Source: Macrostomum lignano
Taxonomy: Eukaryota
Direction of reading: 5' to 3'
Length of the DNA: 64,000 nucleotides
Assembly: GCA_002269645.1 (NCBI GenBank)
Contig: NIVC01001427.1
Coordinates: 124,001 to 188,000 of the forward strand
Shown: positions 6,097-64,000 of the stretch, one piece after another
Numbering within the stretch: position 1 is the stretch's first letter
How the letters are laid out: every line of letters begins with the position of its first letter
Notes under the pieces: model-generated
What the model was told of the DNA's origin: nothing
The model's database searches: none
Seen by the model: only the letters and a program-made list of their open reading frames with translations
Made by a program: the position numbers and the translations under genes

Positions 6097-6198
6097 GTGC
6101 GCCCTGCGACCGCGCCTTTACCACCGGCTTTCCTGCGTAATCCGTTATTCAGTTGCAGCCCTGACTGAAGCTAAATGAAAAATATCAACTGACCAGAC

Positions 6199-27356: not shown

Positions 27357-27487
27357 GTAAGTAAATGGAAACTGATGAACTGTAAATTAATGTATAGTGT
27401 ATTGTGTATTGCACTTATTAGCATATTGCTTTTAGATACTCACAAATAGTCCAAATCCCAAAATATTCTCTAATTTGACCATTGCAG

Positions 27488-29875
27488 ATCATTTTCAAGA
27501 AAATTTGTGTCACAAGAAATGAAGACATGGTTTCAATATGTTCAAAACACCAAAGATCTATCAAGATCTGGAATACAATGTCGGATCTGCAGAAAATTTT
27601 TGAATGCACATAAGAAAAAGGAGACAAATCTAGAGAGCCAACGTAAGTTAACTTTTGCAACAGAACAAGGCTACATTCCCAAAGGTCATGCAAAAGATAG
27701 CGTACGAAGAAAACTACAGGAACATTCATCAAATACACTTCACAGTGACGCCATAAAGTGGATGAAGGAAAAACATACTTCAGTTCTTGCAAAGCAACTC
27801 AAACAGATGAATGAGGCCGCTAGACTAGCTAAAACTAAACGAGATGAAATAACAGCCCGAGTTTTGACAACAGTTTTTTCGCCGAAGTCAAATCTAATAT
27901 TCCATTCAGTGCTCATCCAAATATGATTGATTTACAAGTAAAAAATGGGTTGGATATGGGGAGCCATCATAAGCATCGCAAAAGTGCCGCAGCAATGGTG
28001 GAATCAATCAGTAATACAATGCATCGGACATTTGTGAATTACATTAAAAGTGCTGACAACCTTCCGATTTCTATTGTACTAGATACAACGTCTGATATTC
28101 ATTCAAACAGCTACGTCATGATATACTTCAGAGTTCTTGAAAACAGCCAACCTTTGATGTTTTTTTATCGGTTTAAACGTCTGACTGAAGTAGAGACTGG
28201 ACGAAGCATTTATGAACTTCTCATCCGTTTATTTTCGGATGACAAGCTAGAAGATGAAATCAAACGAAGGCTATGGGGGGTGACAACTGATGGTGCATCC
28301 GTAATGACAGGAAGTCGAGTGGGATTAATAAGTCAACTGAGGCCTTGGGCTAGCAAACAATTTTTTCAGCACCATTGTGCAGCGCATAAGTTAGAACTTT
28401 CAATCTATCATGCCTTTGAAATCTTCCCATTTATGCAACATCTCGATAAGAATATAAATTCTCTACACAAATTTTATATGAGCCACGCTGTTAAACGTAA
28501 GGCATCTTTGGCACAAACTTCGGAAGCACTCAACTTGGTTTTCTATGAATTAAAAAGAATATATCGTATCAGGTGGGTTGCATCGGAAGTGTCTGCTCTT
28601 GATGTGATTCGAAAGTCATACTACTTGCTTCTGACAAATTTAGAAAATATCAAATCACCTTCCTCAGGCTTTGATGACGAAAGTAAAGCAACTGCCTCTG
28701 GATTATTGAAAACATTGCAAAATGTCCGGTATTATTCATTACATCTATTTCTCATGGACATTCTAAAATTACTGGAATTTGAGTCCTTGCAGTTTCAAAG
28801 AGCCAAGGGTACATTTATTGGCTTGCAAGAACGCCACACTAACCTTATCCATTCACTAGAAACCTTAAAAACAAACAATGGTCCTCGCATTGTGGACTTT
28901 TTGGCTTCCTGCAAGTGTCGTCGAGTTTTGGGAACTGCAGATGGATATCCGCAGCTGGAATACCATTCAGGATGTCACACAAGAGACCTATCTTATTCTA
29001 ACTTTGCTTGTCCTTCCGGCCCTGGAAGCAGCGATCCAACAGAGAGGTTTGAGTTGAAGCAACCAGGTTCTGCTGCAGACAGATCTCTAAGAAATAGATT
29101 ATTTGATGCTAGTGGACGTGGCAGTGTTGTTGACATGGGAGCTTATCCAGCACTGGATGAGATTCGCAGTCGAATCATTGATAGCATAATTGATCAGCTG
29201 CGTAATTATTTTCCTGAGGATGACTACTCAATATTTAATGTGCTCAACCCAGTGTTATTGCCTAATGCTGAAACATTACATACTGTCTTTACATACAGTT
29301 CGAGAATCATACCTCTTGCTAGACGGTTTGGAATGGAAGATGACAGCTCTGAATCTGAAACAGAGGACCATCTTTCTGATTCAGACTCTAGAGATGCAGA
29401 TGCTTCAGAACGCGCTACAGAAAGGACAATCTCTGGTCAGTTCGGTCTACTCCTAAAAAGTTTGATCACTTCGCATAGTGTTGACTTCTGTGCCTACAAA
29501 GGCAAAGGTCCGGTGAAATTTTGGAGTCACTTTCTAGAGACAAGAACTGTTGAATGGCTGCCCAGAATAAAGAATCTAATTATGGTTGTGTTAACTTTGC
29601 CAATATCATCAGCTGAGGCTAAAAGAGGGTTTTCTATCTATAAGCACATTGCCTATGACAGGAGAACACGCTTGGCACCAAAAACATTGGAGCATCTACT
29701 ACGGATTCGAATAAATGGGCCTCCGCTGATGAAATTTAAGCCGGATATTTATGTCAATGATTGGCTGAAAAAACACTGGCGTTCTGATGCTCCTGGAGGT
29801 CAACGGCAAAAAGAATCCAACGTAGACGAGGAAAATAAAGATTCTGATTCTGATTTGCTAAGTGGACTATTTTAA
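27488..29875 (+). mobile_element. hAT-superfamily transposase (ZNF862/KIAA1586-like), inactivated
   Basis: TTF-type zinc finger (WFQYV...CRIC...EH...H); one-base frameshift in the T6 run near 27875; catalytic-type motifs SIVLDTTSD, TTDGASVMTG, HCAAHKLEL, RWVAS; hATC region LPISSAEAKRGFS with K where the catalytic E is expected. Confidence 0.88.
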
Positions 29876-30224
29876 AAGTTTTTTATCAGTTTTAATCTGC
29901 TACAATTTTAATCAATTATTACAATGGTACATGCATAATCATTAAGACTACAGTTCTTCTAAGTTCATATATAAGACCGTTAGAATCTTGCAGTTTTAAT
30001 TTGCTAATTAAATATTATTAAAAGTATGATTTGCAATTGTAATAGGGCTGAAAAATTACTGCTTATAAGTTATTCTATCCCTATTTCTATTCCTTAGCCA
30101 TTTCTGGCTTCGTAATTCTTAATTTTTCAAATTGATGCGTTAATGCACACGTAGCCTACACCCTAGTAAGGGATACATTAAATTCATCCTAAACTAATCC
30201 CAACCTAATAATCCTAAAGATGCT

Positions 30225-30778
30225 CTGCGACTTAACTCAGTCCTGCTGCGACTTACCTCGGCCCTGCTGCGACTTACTCGGTCCTGCTGCGACTTAGCTC
30301 GCCCTCGGTGCAACTTAGCTCTCGCTCGGTGCGACTTAGCTCGCCCTCGGTGCGACTTAGCTTGGTCCTGCTGCGACTTAGTGCGACTTAGCTCTCGCTC
30401 GGTGCGACTTAGTTCGCCCTCGGTGCGACTTAGCTCGGTCCTGCTGCGACTTAGCTCGCCCTCGGTGCGACTTAGCTCGGTCCTGCTGCAACTTAGCTCG
30501 CCCTCGGTGCGACTTAGCTCGCCCTCGGTGCGACTTAGCTCGGTCCTGCTGCAACTTAGCTCGCCCTCGGTGCGACTTAGCTTGGTCCTGCTGCGACTTA
30601 GTGCGACTTAGCTCTCGCTCGGTGCGACTTATTTTGCCCTCGGTGCGACTTAGCTCGCCCTTAGTGCGACTTAGCTCTCGCTCGGTGCGACTTAGTTCGC
30701 CCTCGATGCGACTTAGCTCGGTCCTGCTGCGACTTAGCTTGCCCTCGGTGCGACTTAGCTCGCCCTCGGTGTGACTTA
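30225..30778 (+). repeat. 21-bp GCGACTTAG-core array (two unit types), possible subterminal repeats
   Basis: Units GCGACTTAGCTCGCCCTCGGT and GCGACTTAGCTCGGTCCTGCT; the GCGACTTA core also occurs at 25070-25125, upstream of the transposase. Confidence 0.9.
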
Positions 30779-30959
30779 CCTTGTCTTCAGTGCTGCAACT
30801 TACAGCACTTACAACTCTTTTTGTGTTTTTCTCTTTCTCTTTGCTCCCTTTTTCTCGTTTTTTCCTTTTCCTTTCCCCTTTTTCGTCTTTTGTTTTTCGT
30901 TTTTTTTGGCGGTTAATCAATTTTGCGACTTACTTGGTTGGCCGCCAAATCGGAACATT

Positions 30960-31601
30960 CTCAGCAACATTCAAAAGTTCCACCCACCAAGCAAGATAAA
31001 AATTTTCTCACTTATTGCAACAAATTCTCACTCACAATTCAACCCTAGATTACGCAACTAAGCTGCAACAAAGAAAGGAAAGTTGACTATATCAATAACT
31101 TGTAGCCTAATAAATGTCAGTTGCACAAAATCATAAAAAATTTTAATGCAATATTTAGTTAGAATTGCAATGCTTAATAATGCATGTGGGATCCCCTTGC
31201 ATGCAAAAGTGCGCAATTCTGCAGTGTATCCCCAGGATGAGGCAGTGCAGAAAGTCCTAGAGAAGCTGCTACCAAGCATTTTCAATGGTATGACATAGCT
31301 CCGCAACATTCTGTGGTGGATTCTTTTTTCAAATACTGCATTTTAGAAAGTTCCAGACATGCTCGATGGGATTCATGTCTGGGGACTGGGAAGGCCAGTG
31401 CAGAGTGCGCAGCTGTAACTATTCTTTCAGTTGACTAACAGCATTGGCTCGGTGTGGTGGTGCCTTGTCCTCTTGGACCATTAAGCAGACCCAAGCCACC
31501 CCCAAGTGGCAATAAGATTTGTTTGTGTCGTAAGTTGCGTCACTTGCAATGAGTAAAAAATCATCTAACTTAGTGGGATGGAACTTTTGACTGTTGCTGA
31601 G
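30960..31601. mobile_element. MITE-like element with about 60-bp imperfect terminal inverted repeats
   Basis: 30960-31020 CTCAGCAACATTCAAAAGTTCCACCCACCAAG... is the inverted match of 31544-31601 (reverse complement CTCAGCAACAGTCAAAAGTTCCATCCCACTAAG...). No clean TSD seen. Confidence 0.7.
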
Positions 31602-31984
31602 TATATATGGTTGAAGCCTATAATATTCTATTTATAATTATTTGGTATAATAATCCAAATGTAATGACTTTTTAATAATATTATATAGGATACAAAATGG
31701 TACTTTTTGAGTCATTTCTTCAAATTTAATTAAAAAGTTTTACCAATCTTTTTTATCTTGAAAACTCTTATTAATGTATTTTTACCAGATTGTAATAATA
31801 ATATTTTTATATTAAAGTTGTATATAAGTCATAAAAAAATTATATTGTAATCATTTAAATAGGACAATTTAATTTTAAAAGAATTGCTAATAGAGTTTGT
31901 TTATTATTATAGCTTTTAGCAATATGAACTATACTATAACTGATAGTGATATTATTTCTATATTAACTATACCAACTTTAGTGT

Positions 31985-34250: not shown

Positions 34251-34817
34251 ATGTCAGACAATCAGCGGCCAGTCATGGTGTCGCCCTTCTTGAACTTTGA
34301 CCCAGCCCTCATCAATGTCAACCAAGGCAATGAGCAGCAGTACATCTTTGCTGAGGGCGGCCAGGGCCGCGGCCGCTTCGAGCGGGCCTTCTCCGCCATC
34401 GGCGGCTGCGTCCTTGGCGGCGTCTCCGTTGGCGGAGCGCGCGGCCTGTACTCCGGCCTGACGGACGCCCAGATGAGCAGCTTGAGCAGCAGCACGCTGC
34501 GGCGCAGCCACCTGCTCAACCACATGGTCCGCAGCGGCGGCTCCCTGGCCCAGACGGCCGGCTGCATCGGCCTGTTCTACGGCATCTACGACTTCACTTT
34601 GTCGAAGGCGCGCGGCGATGTTGACGACAATGCGAACACCATGGCTGCCTCAGTGCTCACTGGGCTCACCTACAAGCTGCCCGGCCTGCTTAGCGGCGAC
34701 AGGCGTGCCGGCCTGATGGGTCTGGCCAGGGGCGGCGCCGCCGGTCTCGTGGTTGGCGCCTCCCTGGTGGCGCTCACCACTGGCGAGGGCGCCAGGCGCC
34801 TGCTTGGCGGAGACTGA
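34251..34817 (+). CDS. TIMM23: Mitochondrial inner membrane translocase subunit Tim23
   Basis: SPFLNFDP, RGRFERAFSAIGGC, LLNHMVRSG, KARGDVDDNANTMAA and LARGG match recalled TIM23 family motifs; single coding exon, 188 aa. Confidence 0.93.
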   Translation: MSDNQRPVMVSPFLNFDPALINVNQGNEQQYIFAEGGQGRGRFERAFSAIGGCVLGGVSVGGARGLYSGLTDAQMSSLSSSTLRRSHLLNHMVRSGGSLAQTAGCIGLFYGIYDFTLSKARGDVDDNANTMAASVLTGLTYKLPGLLSGDRRAGLMGLARGGAAGLVVGASLVALTTGEGARRLLGGD

Positions 34818-38824: not shown

Positions 38825-39757
38825 GATCTGTGCGTCTCCTGGACTGAGAAACTTGCAGTAAGCGAGCGCTGCACTCCGTTTGAGCAAGCTCTTGAAAACT
38901 CGTGATTTAAATTCGAATGGGTCAACTAGATACGGCCAAACTGCATGAGTTCAGAAGGGTGCGCTAGGGGCTGAGGGCCAAGGGCCAAAGGTCCAAATTT
39001 TGCTGGGCTAGGAGGGGTGGAGCTATACTTGCATTCTTCTGAGGGGTTGGCGGGGCCAGTGCACGGCAGTGGGTGTAACAATGAGTTGGTTTGCCCAGGT
39101 ATAAACGCAGTCCCTATACGTTCGGGCTAGATTTTGCGGAAAGGAAAGAGAGTGCCAACCAACCAATCTTCCACACTATCAATGGAATAGAAACATGCCC
39201 CTGCCATAAGTGTACACTAATATGCCAGGGGTGTTGCTGGCTTCAATTAGGGCAGTGGAGCCTAATAGGCTTGTGCGACATCACGTGGCACATTTATAAT
39301 CACCGGCCTGCACTCTTATTAGCCTGCCCTGCAGGCAGGTGTACTTTAAATTTCTTAGGCAGGAGAAATATGCACTTGTGGAAGCTGAGAGGCTGAATGA
39401 AATTTTGCTCAACGCAATTAATCGAAAAATGTAGTTCCCATAAGCTGGAATTGATACAGTATAACACTTAACTCGAGCAGATTCCAAGATTCAAAATTTC
39501 TCTGGATCTTGTGAATAAATTACTATAAAGTACCTTACATTAATACGACGCACTTAGCAGCTAATGATCAGCGGGTTTGTCTATGGCCCGCAAGCCGAGT
39601 TTAGAATGTCTATGGCCTGACGGCCAGTACAGTCAGTCGTAGGAGGGTCAGCTTAAAACAGATCTTAACAAGTGCGACAGATACCAGCTGCCTCAAATCC
39701 CAAAGTGTCTCTGAATTGAAACTGATTTTTCCGAGTCTTACTTGAACAAGCAAAACT

Positions 39758-39978
39758 ATGGTTCAGCTTCAGCTCCTTATGCTGCTCATTGCCATCATCG
39801 CGTTGCTAAGTGAGTAATCCTTTCTTTGAATTTCATAATTTCTCATTCAATCATCAACCTCATTGTCTAACGCGCGATTTGTCCGTCTGCAGTTCCAGGT
39901 CTCGCCGAAGGCTGCTTTGAGCGCAGCATCAACAGACTGGATCAGGACGAGGATTTCAGAAAGAAGCGATCAGTATGA
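39758..39978 (+). CDS. Small secreted peptide precursor, copy 1 (45 aa)
   Basis: Exons 39758-39809 and 39893-39978 (GTGAGT...CTGCAG, phase 1): [51 protein letters not shown] near 40095. Confidence 0.8.
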
Positions 39979-41410
39979 GCGAGCCGTGTCTGCGGTCCAT
40001 TGACTATTAAGACGATTGATGAATTTCAATTGTTTTTTCGAGTTCTTTTTTTGTTCCTTCAAGCTTCCTGTTTAGCCAGTCTATTATTCATCCAAATAAA
40101 ATACTTAACCTGGTTAAATATTTCTTAAAACCGTTTAAGCTAAAAGTGTTGTAAATGGTTTGTTTTCTATTTATTTCGCTGTTGAGACGCATGAACCAAT
40201 TCATTATATTCCTTCATCCATTATAGATTATGTGTGACGTAAGATTATTTTGATTTTAATATCCATGTGGCGCTGGTACTATCGGCATTCCTGGATTCAA
40301 TCCTGAAACATCAAAATTCTCTATTTTCAAGAAAGTTGTTTGGGGGAGCCAGATCAAAACTGCTGCAAAGTTGAGAATACTTAAGACTTAGCTCGTACTT
40401 TTACGACTGATCAACCCAATCGAAAAAATGTAATCCTGAGAAGCTGGAATGATCCTATTTGTTAAGATATTTGTAGACAACATCAGAAAAAGCTCAGAAC
40501 AAGAGCAACGAATCTCATCGATATTTTATCAATCAACCAAACACTCAAGCCGCCCTCACTGCTTAAACTAGTCAACACTCACTGGAAGGTCAACCAAAAG
40601 CTCTTTCTTTGAACTCCAAAGAACTATATACAGTGTTCCTTGCTCCATAGCTTCTCATTCAATCATCAACCTCATTGTCTGATGCGCGATTTCTTGATGG
40701 ACTCAAGGACAACTTAAGTAGAAGGACGCAACACTCGAAATCTATCGTAAAAGTTTTGAAGGCCGATTATTTCGCCTAAAAATACACTACAGAGATAGGA
40801 GGTTTTAATTTTTTCAGCACAAAAATTGTTATTGCTTTTGATAGGAGGCAGATCCAGTGTTCATCTTTTGATTTGTTGTGCCCTTCTTATTGCTCTATCG
40901 ATGTTCATAAAGCTTTTCGTTCAGAAACAGTTTTAAAGGCAGGTTTCACCGGAAAAATACACTACCGAGATAGGAAATTTCACGATTTTCAACACTAAAA
41001 CAGTGATTGGGTCTCTTAACAGTGTCAGAGAAAGTCCTAATCACACTATTTTGTGCCTCACATGCTGCTCTAACGACGCATTAATCGATTTTTCTTTTTA
41101 AATTGGTCTCTCATTATTTTAAACGCTTTTTCTTGATTTCTTTTTCTTTTCTTGATTTAGTCAAAAGAAAGCAACACTTAATTAAAGAATTGAAAACTCA
41201 TTCAGAAAAGCGTCTATCACATTTGTGTCGAGCACTAAGATTGTATAGTAGTGCTCAGATTGCCACAAAATTATGCTCATCAGTCGACAGACCCCTAATA
41301 CCCGGCTCAATGATGCTTTTGTAATTCGGCATGGTTGGTTCATTTGTTAGCTTTGTAACGATGTTAATATTTAGTTATTCGTAAATAATATGGTATATTT
41401 AATGTCTTCT

Positions 41411-44400
41411 GGCACAGCGACCTGAGCCAGCTGACCTTCGCCCTGGAGGGAGAGCGGCCGAAGACCATCCGCCATCGGATTTGGGTCCCGGCCGACAGTG
41501 CAATCAAGTCCGGGGAGCAGCTGCGGCAGCTCCTGCTCAAGCGGCACCCGGATCTCGACGCCAGTGGTCTTGTGTACCACAACACGGTCCGCAAGGGCAC
41601 GACCGGGGCCACCGTCATCCTCGGCCTGACGGAGGGATGGGCCAAGCGGCTACCGCATGGCTCAAACCTCCACCTTGGTCTCCATCAACTGACCAACCTC
41701 CGCTGCGAGGAGGGCAAGGTGGAGACCAAGAACGATGGGCCGCACCCGGAGCTGGGGCCCAGGCTTCGCCGGCCAAGCGGCAGCAGCAACCCGATCCCGA
41801 GCCTAACAAGGCCATTCGCACTGCTGAGTCCGCCTCGCGCGGACGTAGACCCGCCCGCAGTAACCGGCGGTCCGGGCTAATCCAGCGCGCACTTGACGAA
41901 GCTCAGTCTCTGAGACTTCACCTCGAGCAGACTCGTGCTGCTCGCAAAAACACTGAAAGCCAGCCGAGGGAACTGGACGACGGCATGGCTCAGCCTTCCA
42001 ACTGGTGGGATTACCACCAGGAGGACCTGCCGGCCGAGCTCAGACTCCCGACGGCGGGGCGCAAGGCGAAGGCAGCAGCCGTACCCCAGTCGCTGGGAGG
42101 AGGGCGGTGTAGCGAGGCTAGGTGACTCACCTGCCGTGGGCGCCGTGTCCGCCTCCGCGGCGGCTGGGGAGGCGGCTGAGCCTGAGCCAATGGAAATTGG
42201 CGACTCAACTCTCACCGATGAGGTTAAGAATGAGTTGCTTTTCTCCTCCCCTGGACAGTAGACATGACCGTCTCCCAGGGCATCCACTGCTTGCAGGTCA
42301 ACCTGCAGCACAGCACTGCTGCTTCAGTCAACCTATTGAAGCAAACTGACCAATACGCACCAGGGATTATCCTTATCCAGGAACCTTGGACGCTAAGGGG
42401 CAGCCCCCAGCATGTCCCCACCGGCTTCCAGTGTTTAACCGCTGGCACCCGGGAGGGAAACCTGGCACCAAGATCTTGCATAATGGTGTCTAGCTCCATT
42501 AACGCATGGCTCAGATCGGACCTGTCTACCAGGGACATCTGTGTCATCCAGTCTGAAGACATACTCCCTGGGAGGACTAGCCTCATCGCCTCGGTCTACC
42601 TACCAGGCGACGGCGAGATGATCCCAGGAGAGCTTCAAGGCACCTTGCTTTGCTCCACCAGGAATTATGAGCTGCTTGTGGCAGGCGGCATCAACGCCCA
42701 CCACACCCACTGGGGCAGTTCTGATATTAACCAGAGAGGTGAAGACTTCCTGGCTTATATTGCTACTACAACCCTTGAGTTCTGTAACTCGGGTAGTACC
42801 CCTACCTTCAATAACGGACGCCGATCGGAGGTGCTGGATGCCACCCTCGCCACGCCCAGGCTCTTCCAGAGCACTAGGGAGTGGCGGGTGCTCTCTGAGG
42901 CGTCCCACTCCGATCACAAGCTCATCTCCTTCACGCTGGCCAGCGCCCGAAACGCAGGCCAGGATTACTGGAAACGAAATGCTAGGAATACCGATTGGAC
43001 TGCCTTCAGGCTTGCCTTGGAGGAGACCTATCGATGCACTAGCTCTCCAGTCTCCATCAACACCTGCGAGGAAGCAGATGAATTTGCGGCCGTACTTACG
43101 GACTCGCTTACTGCTGCCTTAGAAGCCTCATGCCCACTAAAGGCATATAAAGGCAAACAGTCGGCCCCATGGTGGAACCCGCAGCTTGGCGACCTCCGCC
43201 GCAGAGCCAAAAGGCTTCACCGTACGGCCCAAAAAACTAAAAATCCGGCCGACCAAACCGCCTACCTGAACTCAATCCACGAGTTCAAGAGGCAGGTTAG
43301 GAACGCCAAAACCAATAAGTGGCGCGAATACTGTGAGGAACTTGAGGGCTCCCGCCCCACCTCCAGAATCGTTAATGTCCAAATGTCCAAAATGTCCAAA
43401 CTCTCCTCAGTCAAGAGAGCCGACGGCTCGCTCACTGAGAACCCAGGAGAAACACTGGAAGCGATGCTAACAGCGTTTTTCCCGTGCGAGCCAGCCAGGC
43501 CCGACCCCCCTGATCACTCAGTGGGCGGTCACGTACTGGCTGACTTAATCATCACGGAGGACCGCGTTGCTAAAGCTGTCTCCTTCTTCAAACCCTTCAA
43601 ATCCCCAGGACCGGACGGCATTGTGCCAGCTTTCCTCCGAGAGGCGGTGAAATGCACCGGTTTTCTGCGGAACCTTTGCCAGCTCTTGAAAGCTTGCATT
43701 GTACTCGGCTTTGTTCCGAAACCCTGGACCGAGGCCAAGGTGGTTTTTATCGCCAAGCCGGGCCGACCGGACTACCGGTCCATTAAATCCTTCAGACCAA
43801 TTAGCCTCACCTCACTGGTGAAGCTGTTAGAGAGACTGGTGCTCTGGCGCCTCCTCTCTGTGGAACTGAAGAACAAGCCGCTCAGTGGGAACCAGCACGC
43901 CTTTCGGGCAGGCCGGTCCACGGAGAGCGCGCTTCACGTTTTGGTTGACATGCTGGAGAAAGCCGTTCTTGGTAATGGCTACGCTCTCGCTGTCTTCCTC
44001 GACATTGTTGGAGCCTTCGATAATGTCCTCTTCGAGGCCTTTGACAGAGCTCTACGTGCTAGAGGAACCCACTCGCACCTCACCCGGTGGATCATGTATA
44101 TGATCAGCCACCGCACTGCCACCGCACACCTGCTGGGCCACCAACGGACGGTAACCGTCTGCAAAGGCAGCCCCCAGGGCGGTGTCCTTTCTCCAGTTCT
44201 CTGGAACATGGTCATCGATGAGCTCCTTCAGGACAGCCATCTGGACCCCATCCTTAAGGTCGGTTACGCCGATGATGTCACAGCCGTAGCATCCGGTCCG
44301 TCACCCGAAACCCTCAGGGATCTTCTGCAAAACTTTATTCGCTCTGCTGAACAATGGGCGGACAGGTGCGGCCTCAGACTCTTCGAGACCAAAACTGTCG

Positions 44401-46063
44401 CGATCATGTTCACCAGCAGGGTCAACTGGCGTATTCGCCCACTAAAGCTTTACGGGGTGGAAATCCCATCCTGCAAGCAAACCAAGTGTCTCGGCGTTAC
44501 GCTGGACCACCGGCTGAGCTGGTCCACCCACGTTCAGGCCAAAACCAAAAAAGCCCTCGCGATTCTTGTGCAGCTGCGCAGAGCCGTCGGCACCACCTCG
44601 GGCCTCACCCCGAAACGGCTCTGGTGGATCTACACCGCAATGGTCCGGCCGGCCGTCACTTACGCCGGCCTGGTCTGCACCAGCGCCTTGCAGATTAAAA
44701 CCTGCCACGAAGCCCTCAAAAAGGTGCAGGGACTTGCGTGCCGCATGATCCTGAATGCCCCGCTCTCTGCTCCCTTTGACGGCCTCAACGCCTTTCTCTG
44801 CCTCCCGCCCCTGGACATCTTTGTCCGTCGCGAGGCTGCTAAAACCACCCGCCGGCTCATCGAGGCTGGTGTTAACTTCAAGCCACAAAGAGCGATGGCG
44901 AAGCGCAAGCTATTGCCGCACTCTGACCTGTGCCTTAAAGTTCTGGAGGAGAGTGGGAGTGCGGCTGTCCTTTCGGACGCTAAGCCGCGCTCCCTCAATC
45001 TCTACCAACGCTTCAAGGTTACTATCCCCTCCAGGGAGAACGCCAACGACAGCTGGGCCCCTCAGGAGGTTCACTGCTTCACTGACGGATCCTCCAAAGA
45101 CAGTTTATCCGGCTTTGGAGTCTGCATCCTTACCAACGGCCGCGTGATCGCCACTCACGCCCAACACACTGGCAGACTCTCCAGCGTCTTCCAGAACGAA
45201 GTCCTTGCCATCAGCTCCTGTGCAGCTGAGCTTCAAGGACTTCAAGGACAGAAGAATTCTATTCCACTCTGACAGTCAGGCCGCTTTGCAGGCCCTGTGT
45301 CACACCACTACGAATTCTCGAACAGTCCACGACTGTATCGGGCAGCTCAACAAGCTGGCTCGGAGGAAAACCGTCCGGCTCACGTGTATCCCAGGACACG
45401 CTGGGTTCAAAGGTAACGAGCTCGCCGACTCCCTCGCCAAGGCGGGTAGTTCTGGCTCGCTCCTTGGCCCCGTGCCCCTGGCCCCCATCCCTGCCACGGT
45501 CATTAATCGTGAGATTAATGCTGGGCGGACATCCTGCACTTAAGCAGATGGGTTGGCATTTCCAACTGCCGCCAGTCCCGTGCTGCAGTGCCCAATCCGT
45601 CCCTCAAGCTGCGGAAAATTCTTTTGAATCAAATTCGAAAAGATATCCGCGCTCTCACTATGACCTTCACAGGTCACGGTTGCTTTGCCAGGCACTGCTT
45701 CCTCCGAAGTATTCGCCGGAGCGAACTCTGCCCCTTCTGCAGCCTTGAGAACGAAGATGCCATGCACTTCATCTGCTACTGCCCGGCCTTCAACCGAGAC
45801 CGGCTCAATCACCTCGGGCCCAACCCGTCCCTGGACGACGTTTGCCGGCCCGAGAACATCCCACGGCTCATCCGGTTCCTCCGGGCTACCAAACGAGCCT
45901 CCGTCTTCCCCACCGAAGACAACGCTGCAGACAGAACCGGCAGACCTCCCTGACCGGCCCCGCGCCCTAGCCTTTGCAGGTCTTTCAGGGATTAGCGGAA
46001 TGGGCGACGCTCGCCTCCTCGCTGCGTCTTCGGACCGCCCTGCAGCTAAGTCAAGTAAGTCAA
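41411..46063 (+). mobile_element. LOA-clade-like (I group) non-LTR retrotransposon, 5'-truncated in ORF1, ORF2 frameshifted
   Basis: ORF1 remnant ends 42261; ORF2 from 42264 with APE (LQVNLQH, LIQEPW, SDH), RT (PQGGVLSP, YADD), RNase H (FTDGS, EVLAI, SDSQAAL, GNELAD) and C-terminal CxxC...H...C; frameshifts near 45250 and 45530; tail TAAGTCAAGTAAGTCAA; candidate TSD AAT[G/C]TCTTCT at 41401 and 46062. Confidence 0.9.
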
Positions 46064-46816
46064 TCTCTTCTTAGTATTGTATTAATTTATCTACTACTAT
46101 TCATTAGCGAATTTTAAAGTTATTCAATATGTACGCTTAAAATTTGTTTTACAGTATCTTTCATAGAAGTATTGTATATTATTTAAAGACTGTTCAATCG
46201 CGATTTTGCGCTCATCGTCTCTTGTGTTTTTCGGGTGGTCCGCTGCTTTGTGCCCGTCTGCAGTAGTTTACCATCAACAATTTAACGGCGATAAAACTAA
46301 AAGTGTATCCTATCTGTTCAAATATATAGAATAAGACAAGTCAACTCGATTCGCCGTAAGACTGTCTCTTACTACGAAGACTCAATTTATTATTGTGCAT
46401 AGCCGTCAGTCTCGAACTCAGAAGGGTCTCGTCACAGCTAGATTTAAAGTTGCTTATAACCTCTAGCTAAGTTTTGTCTGTAAGTCAAATAAGTTTGAAA
46501 CTCTGAGCCCCGATTATTTACGATGCACTTTACTGCATACTGAATTTCACTACTAACTATACTGTATCGACGGTTAAGGCAGGCTGCATTTTTAGCTTGG
46601 CTGAAGCGGCTCATGCACCGATAAACTGTGAAACACTTGTCTATGGCCCGCAAGCCGAGTTTAGAATGTCTATGGCCTGACGACCAGTACAGTCAGTCGT
46701 AGGAGGGTCAGCTTAAAACAGATCTTAACAAGTGCGACAGAAGCCAGCTGCTCAAATCCCAAAGTGTCTCTGAATTGAAACTGATTTTTCCGAGTCTTAC
46801 TTGAACAAACAAAACA

Positions 46817-47037
46817 ATGGCTCAGCTCCAGCTCCTTATGCTGCTCATTGCCATCATCGCGTTGCTAAGTGAGTAATCATTTCTTTGAATTTCATAACTT
46901 CTCATTCAATCATCAGCCTCATTGTCTAACGCGCGATTTGTCCGTCTGCAGTTCCAGGTCTCGCCGAAGGCTGCTTTGAGCGCAGCATCAACAGACTGGA
47001 TCAGGACGAGGATTTCAGAAAGAAGCGATCAGTATGA
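46817..47037 (+). CDS. Small secreted peptide precursor, copy 2 (45 aa)
   Basis: Exons 46817-46868 and 46952-47037; identical to copy 1 except V2A and one silent change; AATAAA near 47154. Confidence 0.8.
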
Positions 47038-48081
47038 GCGAGCCGTGTCTGCGGTCCATTGACTATGAAGACGATTGGTGAATTTCAATTGTTTTTTCGA
47101 GTTCTTTTTTTGTTCCTTTAAGCTTCCTGTTTAGCCAGTCTATTATTCTTTCAAATAAAATATTGAATATTAGAAAGTTGAGTCAAAAATGGTTGGCCAT
47201 AAGCGCATATGTTTCTTTGACGCGTTTGAGCTACAAGTGTGGTAAATGTGTGTTTTCAATTTATTGGCTGTCAAGACGGATGAACTAATCCATTGCATAT
47301 AATATTCCTTCATCTAGGATGGTGGAAAATATTGCACAATTAATAATCATGTGACATAAAATAGATCATTTTGTGTTTAGTATCTGAGGCGTTGCTATGG
47401 TTGGCATTTTTGAATTCAATCCTAAAACAGCAGCAGTCTTTATTTTCATGAAAACTGTTGATGGGGCAGCGAGAGCTCGGCTTTGCTGGAAATTTGTTTT
47501 TGCCTGTTTTTCGTGTCCGCAAGCCCAACGAATCCTGCATCGATTTTTCATCAATCCACCCAAACACGAAGGTCGCTCTTGCTACTTAAAGTAGCAAACA
47601 CTGCAAGGCCAATCGAAAAGTAAAAGAACAAATGCAGCACAAGGCAAGAGAGGCCAGTTTTCGGTCTCTGATGAACTGCAGGGATGAAAAAGAAACTTTC
47701 TGTGAAAAAGCAACAGTTACAAAAAATATCGGCATCTTAAGAGTTGCAGCAAATGAAGGCTGACTTTTTACCACTGCCAGCCCAGTCTCACCTGTACTGC
47801 TCTGATGGATCTGCTCGGATAATCAAAAATCTATTCCCGACTTCCTTTCCTGGAATCTGGGTGTCATGGATACGAATCAATAAAAAACTGTAGACAAACA
47901 ACCCCTGCTCTGCTATCTAAACGGTTAGGGTTACATTAAAATTCATACTCTGCCAAAACTTTTTTCTAATAAAAAATGGATTGCATTTCATATGAAAGAT
48001 TTCATCACAGGCAGTGCCCGCCACGGGAAGGCTCTCAAGTTTCCCCTGGAGCGGCAACGGGAATGAGTTTCTATTTATTTT

Positions 48082-48878
48082 GAGAACTGCACAATATCAC
48101 TAGAAATCTCTTTGAAAACTACACAATCTCACTAGAAATCTCTATGAGAACTGCACAATCTCACTAGAAATCTCTTTGAAAACTACACAGTCTCACTAGA
48201 GATCTCTATGAGAACTACACAATCTCACTAGAAATCTCTATGAGAACTGCACAATCTCACTAGAAATCTTAATGAGAACTGCACAATCTCACTAGAAATC
48301 TCAATGAGAACTACACAATCTCACTAGAGATCTCTATGAGAACTACACAATCTCACTGGAAATCTCTATGAGAACTGCACAATCTCAGTAGAAATCTCTA
48401 TGAGAGCTACACAATCTCACTAGAAATCTCTATGAGAGCTACACAATCTCACTATAAATCTCTATGAGAACTGCACAATCTCACTAGAAATCTCTATGAG
48501 AATTACACAATCTCACTAGAAATCTTTCTGAGAGCTACAAAATCTCACTAGAAATCTCTATGAGAACTGCACAATCTCACTAGAAATCTCTATGAGAGCT
48601 ACACAATCTCACTATAAATCTCTATGAGAACTGCACAATCTCACTAGAAATCTCTATGAGAATTACACAATCTCACTAGAAATCTTTCTGAGAGCTACAA
48701 AATCTCACTAGAAATCTCTATGAGAACTGCACAATCTCACTAGAAATCTCTATGAGAATTACACAATCTCACTAGAAATCTTTTTGAGAGCTACAAAATC
48801 TCACTAGAAATCTCTATGAGAACTACACAATCTCACTAGAAATCTCTATGAGAACCACACAATCTCACTAGAAATCTC
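48082..48878 (+). repeat. 32-bp minisatellite (CTAGAAATCTCTATGAGAACTACACAATCTCA)
   Basis: About 25 tandem units. Confidence 0.95.
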
Positions 48879-49125
48879 TGGTCGCAAATCCGAGTGCGCG
48901 AGAGATTCCAGCTTACAACCCAGCGCTACGCCTGGTTGGATCTTAGGCTATTCAGCCATTTCAGCCACCCCCTCCAGCAAGTCGCAGTCAGAGTGGCCCA
49001 GAGATTTGCGTCGCTCTTTATAAACACAGGAGCTTGCAAGAGGACTGTCGTGAATGCCCTGCTGGAGCCCCGTTGCAATAAGTCAGACATTTAAATTTCA
49101 ACAAGTCAGATCGAGGAACTCCAGA

Positions 49126-49890
49126 ATGCTGCCGCACACCCTGCTGCTGCTGCTGCTGTGGGCGGCGCCTCCGCAGCTGCTGTCCGAGTCCTGCAGCTCC
49201 CCCAGAGCCGCCTTCCACCCAACCACTGGGCTGGACTGCGTGAGCTCCGACTTCACTCGGACACTGTCCGGTCTGTGCTCACCGCTCGAGTGCAGCCACG
49301 CCTGCGCCAACAAGCGAAGCTGCCAGGCCTTCACGGTGAGGAGCAGCGGTGCCTGCCAGTGCAGGCTGTTCGAGTTCGACAAGTGCAGCCACCGCGTGCA
49401 GTCGGTGCCGAACTGCACCAACCAGGTGACTGTGTATGTGAGGTCTCTGCCTGGCGTGCCTCCGGGCCACCTGTGCCCGCCCGGATACCGGCATGCCAGG
49501 TACGGCACCTCCTACAAGCTGGTCACCGCGGGTGCTGCCACCTGGAGCGCTGCCAGCCAGAGCTGCAGCTCGGATCCCGGACTGTCCAAGTTCGCTGACG
49601 CAATCGACCTGGACGAAGCCGAGTACCTGCAGCTGCTGCAGCACCGAATCGCCAGCTCCAGCAGCTTCTTCATCGGCGGGCGCGCTGAGCAGCCCAGAAA
49701 CAAATCGAACTGGTTCTGGACGGCCTGCCAGCTGCCCGTTGACCCGACCGTCTGGCACTCCGGGGAGCCGAATACTGACGCACCGTCTGCCTGCGCCAGC
49801 CTCTACAGCGGTTTTTCGTCCGGTGGCCAGGACGATACACACTGCGATGCGGTCCATGGATTCGTCTGCGAGTGCCAGTCCGTGTTCTGA
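49126..49890 (+). CDS. Secreted PAN/apple-like + C-type lectin domain protein (254 aa)
   Basis: Signal MLPHTLLLLLLWAAPP; CSHACANKRSCQAF PAN-like Cys pattern; CTLD TWSAASQSC...FFIGG...WHSGEPN...C...C...FVCE. Confidence 0.85.
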   Translation: MLPHTLLLLLLWAAPPQLLSESCSSPRAAFHPTTGLDCVSSDFTRTLSGLCSPLECSHACANKRSCQAFTVRSSGACQCRLFEFDKCSHRVQSVPNCTNQVTVYVRSLPGVPPGHLCPPGYRHARYGTSYKLVTAGAATWSAASQSCSSDPGLSKFADAIDLDEAEYLQLLQHRIASSSSFFIGGRAEQPRNKSNWFWTACQLPVDPTVWHSGEPNTDAPSACASLYSGFSSGGQDDTHCDAVHGFVCECQSVF

Positions 49891-51407
49891 AGTGATAGCT
49901 AATAATGTCTTGTCGTTTTGTTCTGTGCACTTGTGGTATTCTGCTGCATCGTCATTGTTATCGTGACAGAGTTGTTATAGGATGCAGAAGATGCAATATC
50001 GTTATGTCGACTCACTTCGCTTTTGTCCTTCTACAAGCCTGTGGAGGCACAGGGTTAAGGCTGAGAATGAGAATAGCCGCTCGAATTGCATTTTTCAACG
50101 CAAAAGCTTTCAGATTTCACTGGTAGAACTGCCTGTCTCTTTACTGAATTGAGGTTCAACTGCAGACGAATTTCTACTTCAAAGCACGCATCAGTGAGCT
50201 CGTTGCAATCAAGCTGTGTTGAAAAACCTTTGTTGCAACCAAGCTGTGTTGAGAAAACATTGTTGCTCTGTTCAAAAACCATTGTTGCAACCAAGCCCTG
50301 TTGAGAAACCATAATAAAAGCATGAGCAGTCAGCTGTCACTGGCAAAAAAGCATGTGTTCCAGATGTTTTCATCGTTTTTCAATTTGATGAAAATAGAAT
50401 TTGTGAGGCGTATGGTGAGAGTACCTCCAAAAGTAACCTGTTCGCGTGGGTCTGTAGTACCGTCTCTGTGTAGCGGATCGAGACTCAAAAGTTAGCTAGC
50501 TGGATGTGGCATTGTCACTTCTTTGTTTTTCCATAACCCTCAAGTAATAACGTTTTATGGCGCATTGGAGAAGTTAGAAACGGATATGGTACCACTTTCG
50601 ATCATGCAGGTGACTGAACATTATACTCGTCCGAGTATCAAGTTGTCTACTGTTATCGGTACGCTCGTAGTTGAAGCGCCCTACGCTGGACATTCCTGGA
50701 CTTTATCAAACAGACTTGGGTGACAAATCCGGGCAATAAAAGGATTTATGATCATACGCTCGTATAACAAATCAGTGTAGTGAAAAATTCATTGAAGACA
50801 CGACTAGAAACCAAGGACCACTAGGAACTCTTCTTTCAAGTCTAGTAGTCCTTGCTAGAAACACAGGCGCAGGTCCGGGTCCCTTCCGGAGCGTTTTTAA
50901 GCTCCATTCTAGAGCCCTAGTGAGAAACGGATCGGATGTGTCGTTGTTTCTATCTATAAACAGTATATACATGTACAGACTGCATGTGTATTGAAATCCT
51001 ATTTACTTTTTTACTCGCTTTTTGAACTTCTGAAAGGCAAATGAAGGCATGAACAGGTTGATATGACAAAAAACAGGAATGCAACAGAATGGCTAAAAAT
51101 CTGAATTCAAGTAAACTTGCCGACCAACCATCCAGTCGCAGACAAGCGTCACTACATACATGTATGCTCTCAGAAGTATTAAAAAACGGAAATACTTCTT
51201 CCGTTTAGAAAAAAAACAAATTCAATGAAACTTCAAAGAGAGGTGTCTATATTTCGGATGCTAAAGTCCTGCAGTAAGAGCGCGGAGGTAAGTTAAAAGC
51301 AGAATACACCGTTTCTTAGTGAGGCACCACTAAGATAATCTCACTGCATCACCGTCGCATCCATGGATTCCAGTCGTTATTTTTTTGCTTGTCTTGGCAG
51401 TCCGCTT

Positions 51408-51892
51408 GACTTACTTGACTTAGCTGCAGGGGGCTTCGCGCGTCCGGAAACAGCGAGGAGGCGTTGCCGCCCATTTCGCTAGCCCCTGGCGACCACGGGC
51501 AGCTAGTGCTGCGGTGTCGCGCAGGGAGTTCCGGTGGTGCCGGCGTCCGCAGCGCGGTCCCCCTCCGGAGTGTCCAGGAGGTGGATGTTCGCTCGCCCAG
51601 TAGCCCTTAGGTAGCGGACGAGCTGGCAGAGATTCTCGGGCCTGAAAACGTCGGAGAGGTCCGGGTTTGGGCCGAGGTAGGTGAGCCTGTCCTGAGTAAA
51701 GGCGGGGCATTCACAGATGAAGTGCTCCGCATTCTCGACACCGGAGAGGCAGAAAGGGCATTCCTCACTGCGGATTTTCTCCTGGAGGTAACGATGCCTG
51801 GCAAAGCAGCCATGACCCGAGAGGGCCATGGTCACCGCCCTGATGTCCCTGCGGTTAAGTCCAAGCAGGGCCCTGCGTAGGGCGGAGGAGGG
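51408..51892 (-). mobile_element. 5'-truncated LINE fragment related to the 41411-46063 element, with 13-bp TSD
   Basis: Encodes GHGCFARH...CPFC...HFICECPAF; same 3' tail CTGCAGCTAAGTCAAGTAAGTC; TSD TGGCAGTCCGCTT at 51395-51407 and 51893-51905. Confidence 0.9.
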
Positions 51893-52652
51893 TGGCAGTC
51901 CGCTTAGTTCTTCAGAAGCTTCTAGAGTTCGTTTTTTAGCTCGGAAGACCAATGATCGCGTCGGTTCGGTTTGTGACTGCTGCCTCTCATGGAATGGACT
52001 ATTCAAAACATTTAGCAAGTTTTACAAGACAGACTTTACATTACGGACAGACGTAAAATCCGCGTAAGTTTTCCGCGTTCACAGGTCTTCTGGATAGAAA
52101 CTACCGACAAACGGAACTACTAAGGTAACACTTCAAGGAATTGACTGAAGTGGGTCTACTTGGGCCTTAAAAAAACAACTGAGCACGTGTTGCATGTAAC
52201 GAGCGAACCTCTATCGCTCCATCGATGAAAACCTGTGTGTACTTGTGGATATTTGATAGTATATGTTAAATATCGAATATAGGATAGTGGAGATTGAGTA
52301 TGAACTGGAGTTTAATCATCGGTGAAAGTGCACAGCAGAAGATGCTTCCATGCAGCGAATGACCCGTGTATTATGACCGTAAATGAGTTTTTAATTGCGC
52401 TCATTTATAGATTGAACTGCTTGGCGTTACTGTATTTTAGGCGACGCTGGATATTTATTTAGGTGTCATTGTAAAATTTTTAGCTTTTCTCAGCTCGTTT
52501 CCAGTCTAGATGAGTTCACGGAGCTCCTACGAGTACTTTAGCCTTATCAGTCATCAAGGGATTCTAATTCTAATGGGAATTGTCAGCAGTCAGTTTGCAG
52601 CTCCTGGTTAACATAGGTAATGCTCCTGTCAGAGAAATCTATTGAGCAGCCG

Positions 52653-63060: not shown

Positions 63061-63254
63061 GCTTTGACATCTCAGAAACCCCCCCCCCGTAATCTCAGTT
63101 ATTCTCTGAGAGCCTTTGCGTCTCAGTTTTTCTCCCCAGCACAGCATTATAGTTGCATTTAATTTTTACATGAACCCTTCATGTCTGACATGACGTTTCT
63201 TTTATTCTACCGTGACGCTTCTTAATTTTTTAAATGACACTTTCATTAGTTTTA

Positions 63255-64000
63255 AATGAGGCTTCTATGATTTTTTCTTGACGCTTCTATGATTTTTACA
63301 TGACGCTTCTATGATTTTTATATGACGTTTCTATGATTGTTTACATGACGCTTCTATGATTGTTTACATGACGCTTCTATGATTGTTTACATGACGCTTC
63401 TATGATTTTTTACATGACGCTTCTATGATTTTTTACATGACGCTTCTATGATTGTTTACATGACGCTTCTACGATTTTTTACATGACGCTTCTATGATTG
63501 TTTACATGACGCTTCTATGATTGTTTACATGACGCTTCTATGATTTTTTACATGACGCTTCTACGATTTTTTACATGACGCTTCTACGATTGTTTACATG
63601 ACGCTTCTATGATTTTTACATGACGCTTCTATGATTGTTTACATGACGCTTCTATGATTTTTTACATGACGCTTCTATGATTTTTTACATGACGCTTCTA
63701 TGATTTTTACATGAAGCTTCTACGATTGTTTACATGACGCTTCTACGATTGTTTACATGACGCTTCTATGATTGTTTACATGACGCTTCTATGATTTTTA
63801 CATGACGCTTCTATGATTGTTACATGACGCTTCTATGATTTTTTACATGACGCTTCTACGATTGTTTACATGACGCTTCTATGATTTTTAATGACGCTTC
63901 TACGATTTCTTACATGACGCTTCTACGATTTTTTACATGACGCTTCTATGATTTTTTACATGACGCTTCTATGATTGTTTACATGACGCTTCTACGATTT
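63255..64000 (+). repeat. 22-23-bp minisatellite (TACATGACGCTTCTATGATT[T/G]TT), continues past the window end
   Basis: Direct reading. Confidence 0.97.

Follow-up and report, generated by a model that had tools for sequence, protein, structure and literature searches.

Anatomy of the duplicated unit

The window analyzed here, a stretch of about 64 kb, is identical in sequence to part of contig NIVC01001427.1 in the assembly Mlig_3_7 of Macrostomum lignano; the species was recognized by means of Tim23. This flatworm is a simultaneous hermaphrodite and serves as a model in research on sexual conflict. A comparison of repeat families within the window revealed a unit of about 530 bp in two direct copies, which are about 97-98% identical and start 7,059-7,060 bp apart. 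Copy 1 (W1; 39577-40107) and copy 2 (W2; 46637-47166) are both located on the plus strand and each consists of a 5' region, two putative exons, an intron, a 3'UTR and a poly(A) signal. On the contig they occupy about 163,577-164,107 and 170,637-171,166, at a site bordered by an acyl-CoA-synthetase-like gene and a C-type-lectin-like ORF. The initial annotation had described a two-exon micro-gene at this place, duplicated together with its promoter region, 83-nt intron and AATAAA, with an identical exon 2 in both copies and with tandem acceptors that allow a product shorter by 2 aa. This structural reading holds in all details.

The putative promoter and 5'UTR of W1 (39577-39757, plus strand) open with two exact copies of TGTCTATGGCC at 39578 and 39607, a motif that occurs in the window only inside W1 and W2. 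The 5' edge is sharp and no similarity between the copies exists farther upstream. The 144 nt ahead of the start codon (39614-39757) are free of ATG, and the ATG at 39758 carries an A at -3 and a G at +4. The coding part of exon 1 (39758-39809) comprises MVQLQLLMLLIAIIALL and the first base of codon 18, which gives a phase-1 junction at A|GTGAGT. The intron (39810-39892) is 83 nt long and extends from GTGAGT to CTGCAG; a second in-frame acceptor, TTCCAG, is located 6 nt downstream, ends at 39898 and would lead to an 89-nt intron and a 43-aa product. The coding part of exon 2 (39893-39978) reads (I)PGLAEG|CFERSINRLDQDEDF-RKKR-SV and closes with TGA at 39976-39978. It is followed by a 3'UTR (39979-40107) with AATAAA at 40095-40100, 117 nt past the stop; all of these W1 features are on the plus strand. 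The gene model of W2, on the same strand, has its ATG at 46817, an exon 1 extending to 46868, an intron at 46869-46951, exon 2 at 46952-47037 and AATAAA at 47154-47159. Splicing of the hydrophobic exon 1 of 17 codons to the exon 2 of 27 codons would result in a product of 45 aa, MVQLQLLMLLIAIIALLIPGLAEGCFERSINRLDQDEDFRKKRSV, or in the shorter form of 43 aa (...ALLSLAEG...). Base by base, exon 2 of W1 and W2 is the same, and the W2 product differs from that of W1 by V2A (MAQ...). Donor and acceptor of the unit agree with the splice consensus of M. lignano, which is GT[G/A]AG for the donor and CAG for the acceptor (PMC8629364).

Considering the two strands of the window together, 815 ATG starts are open, and the exon-1 start ranks first among them in hydropathy. 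A gene-model scan combining a hydrophobic start, a GT[GA]AG donor, a CAG acceptor, R-x-K/R-R and AATAAA, which was devised after the finding had been seen, matched only the two units within the window and gave 0 matches in 40 shuffles. No other ATG ORF of more than 38 aa was found in the unit region, and a TTAAAA-like upstream element was not conserved among the copies. Trans-splicing of the gene was rejected, as reading of the sequence upstream of the ATG revealed no [T/C]TNCAG acceptor (consensus from PMC8629364). We also rejected exon 1 as a signal exon of the C-type-lectin-like ORF downstream of the unit, since a signal peptide is already encoded in this ORF and since exon 2 terminates with a stop codon and AATAAA comes after it.

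Homeologous copies and history of the duplication

For comparison we included two homeologous contigs, L001 and L003, so that four copies of the unit could be compared (W1, W2, L001 and L003). L003 carries copy 1 and a LINE and ends inside this element; it therefore gives no independent view of copy 2. On L001 a single recombinant unit is present, which has the upstream flank of W1 and the body and downstream flank of W2. The copies group as (W1,L003) and (W2,L001), and thus two distinct lineages of the unit exist. Non-syntenic copies were not seen in the window of about 64 kb or at the two other loci of 20 kb. A search for further decayed fragments at 46064-46636, 40700-41400, 39000-39576 and 47170-48080 yielded Smith-Waterman scores that were not above those of shuffles.

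The upstream flanks of W1 and W2 are unrelated, and the downstream flank of W1 (40118-40600) is about 67-73% identical to its counterpart at W2 (47209-47620, both plus strand). As judged from this similarity, the downstream flanks are the remnant of an older, larger duplication. Identity is about 97% from 181 nt upstream of the ATG through about 8 nt past AATAAA, where the high-identity tract of W1 ends, and then falls abruptly to 67-73% over the next ~500 bp, so that the homogenised tract ends at the predicted transcript end. Because the downstream flanks are only about 70% identical, the transcription unit was probably homogenised by gene conversion, a reading drawn solely from the identity step; the informative sites were too few for a formal conversion test. 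The weak homology beyond the 3' edge of the unit argues for a DNA-based duplication, and a retrocopy origin was rejected given the retained intron, the lack of a poly(A) tail and the continuing downstream homology. An uncollapsed haplotype, a possibility raised in the initial annotation, is contradicted by the position of both copies on one contig, their differing flanks and an arrangement that is partly repeated on a second contig. Long near-identical sequence on both sides of W1 and W2, as in a false duplication, is absent. The duplication is very probably real DNA and not a haplotype artefact.

Between the copies lies a degenerate non-LTR retrotransposon (41411-46061, plus strand) with APE endonuclease, RT, RNase H and a C-terminal Cys/His-rich tail. 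It is bordered by an imperfect target-site duplication of 10 nt (AATGTCTTCT/AATCTCTTCT) and contains a frameshift near 45260 and a stop at 45541. The insertion is common to L003 and absent from L001. A lone copy of about 57 nt of the intron interior (40636-40692, plus strand; 91% over 47 nt), with unrelated flanks and no exons, is also present in L003; since this piece was copied alone, small patches appear to move around the locus. The locus is very repeat-rich, and a spliced-leader-like fragment adjoins W2, together with the LINE, just upstream. No TE ORF (transposase, RT) was found to be encoded in the unit.

An old DNA-level duplication would have preceded the separation of the three subgenomes of M. 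lignano and produced two units at a distance of about 2.4 kb. The transcription unit of about 530 bp would later have been homogenised, probably by gene conversion, with flanks that decayed to ~70% identity, and the LINE would have inserted between the copies after the homogenisation. Unequal crossing-over somewhere in the initial ~100 bp of the unit would account for the single recombinant unit of L001.

None of the four copies has lost the ORF, the donor, either of the acceptors, RKKR or AATAAA. Over these copies 5 of 138 sites vary in the CDS, 5 of 83 in the intron, 9 of 182 in the 5' region and 8 of 126 in the 3'UTR; with four copies and few changes, the variability of the CDS was not significantly below that of the intron or UTRs. 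Three of the variable CDS sites are synonymous and two are non-synonymous (V2A in the signal peptide and, in L003, F to L at position 2 of the mature peptide). The divergence of the unit between homeologs is 1-2%, as is that of the flanks, with no extra constraint visible, and it is on par with the genome mean of 2.2% (PMC10733133). The four copies thus give no significant signal of coding selection, for which a divergence of 1-3% is too low, and four intact ORFs out of four are weak evidence.

Predicted product and searches for relatives

The predicted signal peptide has a hydrophobic core of 14 residues, Pro at -6 and A-x-G at -3/-1, followed by Cys (LQLLMLLIAIIALL-IPG-LAEG|C). By hydropathy and the (-3,-1) rule, inspection points to a textbook cleavable N-terminal signal peptide. 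RKKR is an exact R-x-K/R-R convertase motif located 2 residues ahead of the stop and is conserved in all four copies. Cleavage at both sites would leave the acidic 15-mer CFERSINRLDQDEDF, with a monoisotopic mass of 1885.83 Da and a net charge of about -3. Some features of the precursor count against a prepropeptide: the n-region of the signal contains no basic residue, and an amidation Gly is missing, as the initial annotation had pointed out, with Phe preceding RKKR. In known flatworm neuropeptide families, a Gly that precedes the basic site and allows C-terminal amidation is typical but not universal. In size, too, the 45-aa precursor falls at the very low end of what is seen among secretory proteins.

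No protein relatives of the 45-aa precursor were found in a word-indexed search of 5.8 billion proteins. The query for exhaustive HMMER searches was the contiguous 35-aa frame of exon 2, including the part translated from the intron, and both matches were rejected as spurious: one covers only the intron-translated part and the signal c-region ('AVPGLAEG' repeats of a 1220-aa protein) and the other could not be aligned. Back-translated pattern scans of metagenome contigs gave 0 matches. The peptide string was not found in the literature searched, and it is absent from those parts of the supplements of a M. lignano seminal-fluid screen (PMC5977470) that were available. In the general neuropeptide literature no M. 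lignano neuropeptide catalogue containing the peptide was found, and protein and literature searches revealed no similarity to known flatworm neuropeptide families (npp, spp, NPF/NPY, FLP and others). At the RNA level, the intron, the intron fragment and the 5' region had no Rfam match at gathering score or E <= 1 and were negative in a tRNA search, and the intron and 5' region folded no more stably than shuffles. Readings of the unit as a mirtron, SL RNA or snRNA were rejected on the basis of these Rfam, tRNA and folding tests.

The annotated records of this contig and of its two homeologs contain no gene call at the unit, in agreement with the claim that the ORF track had missed the gene. 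The GenBank annotation of M. lignano left out transcripts that TransDecoder called non-coding (PMC5730564), so an ORF of 45 aa could be lost from it even if expressed. The absent annotation may simply reflect this pipeline.

A candidate prepropeptide and its alternatives

The reading we lean towards is that of a Macrostomum-restricted, unannotated micro-gene in two copies, which would encode a lineage-restricted secretory prepropeptide cut at RKKR. Each copy would be transcribed from its own promoter inside the ~180 bp upstream of the ATG, one intron of 83 or 89 nt would be removed at the consensus sites seen in the sequence, and polyadenylation would take place just past AATAAA. The 45/43-aa product would be directed to the ER by a signal peptide of 24/22 residues that is cleaved, as its textbook features suggest, after A-E-G. 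A furin/PC-type convertase would then cut after RKKR and a carboxypeptidase would remove the basic residues to release the acidic 15-mer. The single N-terminal Cys of this peptide could give rise to a disulfide dimer, and the peptide would act extracellularly as a signalling or reproductive/secretory peptide; the candidate roles named in the initial annotation were those of a neuropeptide, pheromone, seminal-fluid or defence peptide. It is a rather unlikely extension of this reading that the acidic 15-mer, maybe as a Cys-linked homodimer, is a Macrostomum-specific orphan signal with a reproductive, pheromonal or neuroendocrine role, released from a prepropeptide that would be among the shortest known in animals, with 4-5 near-identical copies over three subgenomes kept by gene conversion.

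The gene-like features could also have come about by coincidence, or be left over from a gene that has died, in a recently converted intergenic block of 530 bp, so that the ORF would be a chance product of duplicated non-coding DNA. We consider this doubtful, but a serious possibility. It fits with CDS, intron and UTRs that vary alike, a homeolog divergence equal to that of the flanks, the lack of a homologue in protein or metagenome searches, the lack of annotation at three loci and a repeat-rich locus with a lone intron piece at 40636-40692. However, a number of independent gene features follow each other in the right order, phase and spacing, the exon-1 start ranks 1/815 for hydropathy, 40 shuffles yielded no match to the combined model, the high-identity tract stops at the poly(A) signal and the annotation pipeline may explain the missing gene call. 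A real gene with another product seems unlikely to us. This product would be a membrane-anchored micropeptide whose hydrophobic N-terminus stays on as a signal anchor, still joined to a charged tail of 21 residues, CFERSINRLDQDEDFRKKRSV, or a secreted 21-mer that is left uncut at RKKR. Pro at -6 and A-x-G at -3/-1 constitute a canonical signal-peptidase site, R-K-K-R agrees exactly with the furin/PC consensus and a hydrophobic stretch of 17 residues is short for a stable membrane span, all of which speaks against such products, whereas they would suit the very short precursor, a hydrophobic run of 14-17 residues without a charged n-region, the nearly neutral uncut 21-mer (+0.8, pI 8.2) and a basic cluster at the extreme C-terminus as in many single-transmembrane micropeptides.

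Two further explanations concern the DNA itself. Homeologous or haplotypic versions of one locus could have been joined in tandem in a polyploid PacBio assembly, with one copy per chromosome. In Mlig_3_7, which comprises three homeologous subgenomes, chimeric scaffolds make up 36% of the length (PMC10733133), the single unit of L001 joins the upstream flank of W1 to the downstream flank of W2, and L003, ending in the LINE, does not independently show copy 2. Nevertheless we regard such an artefact as very unlikely, because the unrelated upstream flanks and ~70% similar downstream flanks are unlike stitched haplotypes, two lineages, (W1,L003) and (W2,L001), are present and the 7-kb interval fits within one long read. 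Lowest in probability, and extremely unlikely in our view, is that the unit belongs to a mobile element or to a gene of greater extent, for instance as a captured piece or as a set of alternative first exons spliced to distant exons. The very sharp 5' edge, which abuts different sequence in W1, W2 and L001/L003, would be in line with it, as would the LINE and the spliced-leader-like fragment just upstream of W2; but every copy seen is syntenic, the unit encodes no transposase or RT, the weak homology past the 3' edge indicates a DNA-based duplication, exon 2 closes with a stop codon ahead of AATAAA, and the lectin-like ORF downstream has a separate signal peptide.

Several known systems resemble the favored prepropeptide gene in part. 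In insects, small secreted-peptide genes in tandem duplicates are known from Drosophila (Bomanin-type immune and Sex Peptide-type seminal peptides), with precursors of ~45-55 aa that consist of a signal peptide and one short peptide, in local duplicated clusters and of taxonomically restricted range. The candidate would share the tiny precursor, the local duplication and the restricted range; it has no sequence relationship to them and no Bomanin CxxC motif, and the predicted net charge of its peptide is negative, unlike that of most antimicrobial peptides. Concerted evolution by gene conversion limited to the transcription unit is known from hsp70 and globin duplicates. Similarly, the unit is ~97% identical from promoter to poly(A) compared with ~70% in the adjacent duplicated flank, and the homeologs carry it in different copy numbers, as unequal exchange would predict. 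Transmembrane micropeptides encoded by smORFs have a CDS of <50 codons, below annotation thresholds, and one hydrophobic helix with a short charged tail. Here, too, the CDS has <50 codons, one hydrophobic segment and a short charged tail, but the segment is N-terminal and comes with a signal-peptidase site and a furin motif, and secretion is therefore favored over membrane residence. Flatworm peptide prohormone genes are often missed by automatic annotation. Among them, the planarian spp ('secreted peptide prohormone') genes with their expanded 'Planarin' paralogs are small and lineage-restricted (Collins et al. 2010, PMC2953531), and like these prohormones the candidate shows a predicted signal peptide, then a short peptide bounded by a basic convertase site, in a small lineage-restricted duplicated gene. 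Unlike them, it lacks sequence similarity, has one peptide per precursor and is with 45 aa much shorter than typical; the missing C-terminal Gly and the strongly acidic predicted mature peptide also set it apart from typical flatworm neuropeptides.

If the unit is expressed, it would be a concrete peptide gene that is invisible to the M. lignano reference annotation, from which TransDecoder-non-coding transcripts had been removed, and because of this removal other very small secreted-peptide genes of M. lignano may be under-annotated. The function of the candidate peptide would be directly testable, as it is short enough for synthesis and RNAi knock-down is available in this laboratory animal. 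If the unit is not expressed, it would be a useful warning that DNA rich in repeats may acquire or retain the anatomy of a gene. In addition, the locus illustrates on a small scale how unequal exchange and the insertion of a LINE make the subgenomes of a neopolyploid differ in copy number.

Anatomy of the duplicated unit

Repeat and alignment analysis revealed a direct repeat of about 530 bp on the plus strand, whose two copies W1 (39577-40107) and W2 (46637-47166) show about 97% identity and are separated by 7,059/7,060 bp. Each copy of this unit begins with about 181 bp of 5' sequence, followed by an ATG (39758 in W1, 46817 in W2) in a good context with A at -3 and G at +4. The exon-1 coding stretch comprises 52 nt in either copy and encodes M-V/A-QLQLLMLLIAIIALL. 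In both copies the intron is 83 nt long, with the donor GTGAGT and the 3' end CTGCAG, and a second acceptor, TTCCAG, is located in frame 6 nt further downstream. The predicted junctions are 39809|39893 or 39809|39899 in W1 and 46868|46952 in W2. Exon 2 consists of 27 codons, ends with TGA and is identical in sequence in W1 and W2. An AATAAA is present (40095 and 47154) within a 3'UTR of about 120 nt. The predicted spliced products are MVQLQLLMLLIAIIALLIPGLAEGCFERSINRLDQDEDFRKKRSV (45 aa) or a 43-aa form with ...ALLSLAEG.... The initial annotation had described a duplicated gene for a 45-aa secreted peptide, and our reading of 39000-48000 together with the repeat and alignment analysis confirmed all of its structural statements. 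From its interpretation the anatomy and the duplication could be demonstrated, whereas processing and function stay at the level of prediction.

Homeologous loci and origin of the two copies

The Tim23 ORF of the window (34251-34817) shares 99% identity with a protein of Macrostomum lignano; after this, the best matches are trematode proteins with about 50% identity. The three-member Tim23 protein cluster of this species provided three annotated loci. L002 (NIVC01001427.1, 148230-168817) is the locus of the window itself (24230-44817, 100% identity), and the homeologous loci L001 (NIVC01000301.1) and L003 (NIVC01004077.1) are collinear with it at about 93-99%. This fits the three homeologous subgenomes (S, L1 and L2) published for Mlig_3_7, which differ by about 2.2% in SNPs and by numerous indels (PMC10733133). 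The genes called in all three loci are Tim23 and a minus-strand AMP-binding (acyl-CoA-synthetase-like) gene, with a hAT transposase or a PAK kinase in the loci that extend to them. The window interval 25025-31602, present in L002, contains a hAT-family transposase ORF of 650 aa (27923-29875), and L001 carries a shorter unrelated interval of 2.8 kb with a different called gene instead (4485-7331), so we regard this difference as a subgenome-specific insertion or replacement. No gene is called at the unit in the annotation of L001, L002 and L003, and, as stated in the initial annotation, the ORF track did miss it. Coding potential in the M. lignano genome annotation was assessed with TransDecoder, and transcripts classed as non-coding were left out (PMC5730564); a transcript with a 45-codon stretch as its sole ORF could therefore have been discarded even if abundant. 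The missing annotation says nothing on expression.

At diagnostic sites the units cluster as (W1,L003) and (W2,L001), and the two unit lineages are therefore, on this grouping, older than the subgenome split. L003 carries W1, the sequence downstream of it, an isolated intron fragment and the degenerate non-LTR retrotransposon that separates W1 and W2 in the window, and the contig stops inside this element. L001 has a single unit and no counterpart of 39577-46636. Its upstream flank is of the W1/L003 type, but from about alignment column 144 onward the body, and likewise the downstream flank, is of the W2 type, an arrangement which would be the expected product of unequal crossing-over in the first ~100 bp of the unit.

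Upstream of 39577/46637 no similarity between W1 and W2 was found in the alignment, and past about 40104/47163 their identity drops sharply from about 97% to 67-73%, with the weaker similarity running for about 500 bp. We infer an old duplication in which gene conversion subsequently homogenised a core the size of the transcription unit; the converted tract would end no more than about 10 nt from the poly(A) signal. The retrotransposon (41411-46061) appears to have inserted between the copies after this homogenisation. It has a target-site duplication with a 9/10 match (AATGTCTTCT/AATCTCTTCT), endonuclease and RT domains, an RNase H domain split by a frameshift near 45260, and a stop at 45541. 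Without this element the distance between W1 and W2 would be about 2.4 kb. A stitched haplotype as the source of the pair was rejected because the contexts are distinct, unrelated upstream and diverged downstream. These flanks, the two unit lineages and the inserted element thus argue that W1 and W2 are real paralogs.

Several further features were found in the surrounding sequence. The same retrotransposon family is present twice, at 41411-46061 (+) as a 5'-truncated and broken copy and at 51406-52018 (-) as a short 3' fragment coding for the C-terminal zinc-finger part, with the common 3' end ...CTGCAGCTAAGTCAAGTAAGTCAA. A lone patch of the unit intron (about 57 nt, 91% over 47 nt) is located at 40636-40692 (+), 812 bp downstream of its W1 position, and also at L003:16546-16592; the sequence on either side is unrelated, with nothing resembling an exon in the vicinity. 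Indels cluster at both unit edges, with two (about 40 and 50 nt) directly upstream of W1 between the window and L001/L003 and, just 3' of W2, about 217 bp (47227-47444) that L001 (16163-16165) lacks; inside the unit the four copies differ by only two 1-nt indels. Minisatellites are very dense in the window (42 TRF rows, with units of 20-70 nt in 10-50 copies, for example 48081-48879, 6203-7534, 13805-14794, 19394-20399 and 63213-64000), and one array, 25 copies of a 32-nt unit immediately 3' of W2, varies in length among homeologs. A C-type lectin domain ORF of 278 aa (49054-49890, +), 2 kb downstream of W2, has its own signal-like start from Met25 (MLPHTLLLLLLWAAPP...) and is not among the called genes of L001.

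Evidence for and against a gene

An alignment of the four unit copies (W1, W2, L001 and L003) showed that ORF, donor, both acceptors, RKKR, stop and AATAAA are intact in all four. Variable sites amount to 5/138 in the CDS, 5/83 in the intron, 9/182 in the 5' region and 8/126 in the 3'UTR, a trend in the direction expected of a coding gene but, with four copies, far from significant. Three of the CDS changes are synonymous (Leu5, Ile11 and a Gln) and two non-synonymous (V2A in W2/L001 and, in L003, F to L at residue 2 of the mature peptide). In 200-bp bins, divergence of the unit between homeologs is 1-2%, indistinguishable from the flanks and the genome mean. No measurable constraint on the unit was visible in either comparison, and these alignments neither confirm nor deny selection.

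On balance we lean towards a real, translated gene for a secreted peptide. The exon-1 start ranks first in hydrophobicity among the 815 ATG starts of the window with 17 open codons. The donor and both acceptors agree with the M. lignano splice consensus (donor GT[G/A]AG, acceptor CAG; PMC8629364), and downstream of the splice sites come the reading frame, the stop and the poly(A) signal, in the expected order. A scan for the whole architecture, devised post hoc, matched only W1 and W2 and nothing in 40 composition-preserving shuffles. The tract of high paralog identity coincides with the predicted transcript end. The unit contains neither a competing ATG ORF of more than 38 aa nor an RNA family match or a stable fold. 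Against a gene count the extremely short precursor (45/43 aa), the failure to measure any constraint and the negative outcome of protein, literature and metagenome searches for a homologue.

Predicted processing and relation to known peptides

The product would enter the ER, and at such a size translocation would probably be post-translational, as is the case for very short precursors. Signal peptidase would cut after A-E-G, a textbook cleavage site with Pro at -6, Ala at -3 and Gly at -1. Cleavage by a furin/PC-type convertase after R-K-K-R and removal of the basic residues by a carboxypeptidase would yield CFERSINRLDQDEDF, with a computed monoisotopic mass of 1885.83 Da, a pI of about 4.1 and a charge of about -3. 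The lone N-terminal Cys may join two peptides as a homodimer, with a computed mass of about 3769.6 Da for the disulfide-linked form. For the L003 variant with F to L the computed mass is 1851.84, and for the 21-mer left uncut at RKKR it is 2640.32 Da. The marked acidity of the peptide speaks against a cationic antimicrobial peptide of the classical type.

No trans-splice acceptor [T/C]TNCAG was found upstream of the unit ATG, so the gene would run from its own promoter. Non-conserved genes of M. lignano are enriched among non-trans-spliced genes (PMC8629364). Exact copies of the 11-mer TGTCTATGGCC are confined, within the window, to the two units, which each carry a pair of them at the 5' edge (39578-39588 and 39607-39617 in W1, 46638-46648 and 46667-46677 in W2), and with up to one mismatch the window contains 10 matches versus about 1 expected. 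A related copy, TGTCTATGGCCTGCC, is located about 150 nt upstream of the L001 and L003 units in an indel missing from the window. The paired motifs are candidate cis-elements, or they may mark a hot spot of recombination at the edge of the duplication.

About 240 nt upstream of W2 a spliced-leader-like sequence was identified (46363-46402, +). Over 27 nt, its part TCTCTTACTACGAAGACTCAATTTATT differs at 1 position from the 35-nt M. lignano spliced leader (PMC8629364; chance expectation 0). Beyond this part the sequence diverges (ATTGTGCATAGCC); it is without a GTAAG donor, and its fold is no more stable than that of shuffles. It probably derives from an SL RNA gene that has decayed or from the 5' end of a trans-spliced mRNA that was retro-copied.

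The unit resembles a minimal prohormone or secreted-peptide gene, like the planarian spp genes and the expanded 'Planarin' paralogs (PMC2953531), and is similar in size to the smallest insect secreted-peptide genes, but the usual amidation Gly is absent. A comparison with described peptide families revealed no sequence similarity. Taken together, the unit belongs to no described family and is a candidate orphan micro-peptide gene, which in a model flatworm would be useful, testable and unsurprising.
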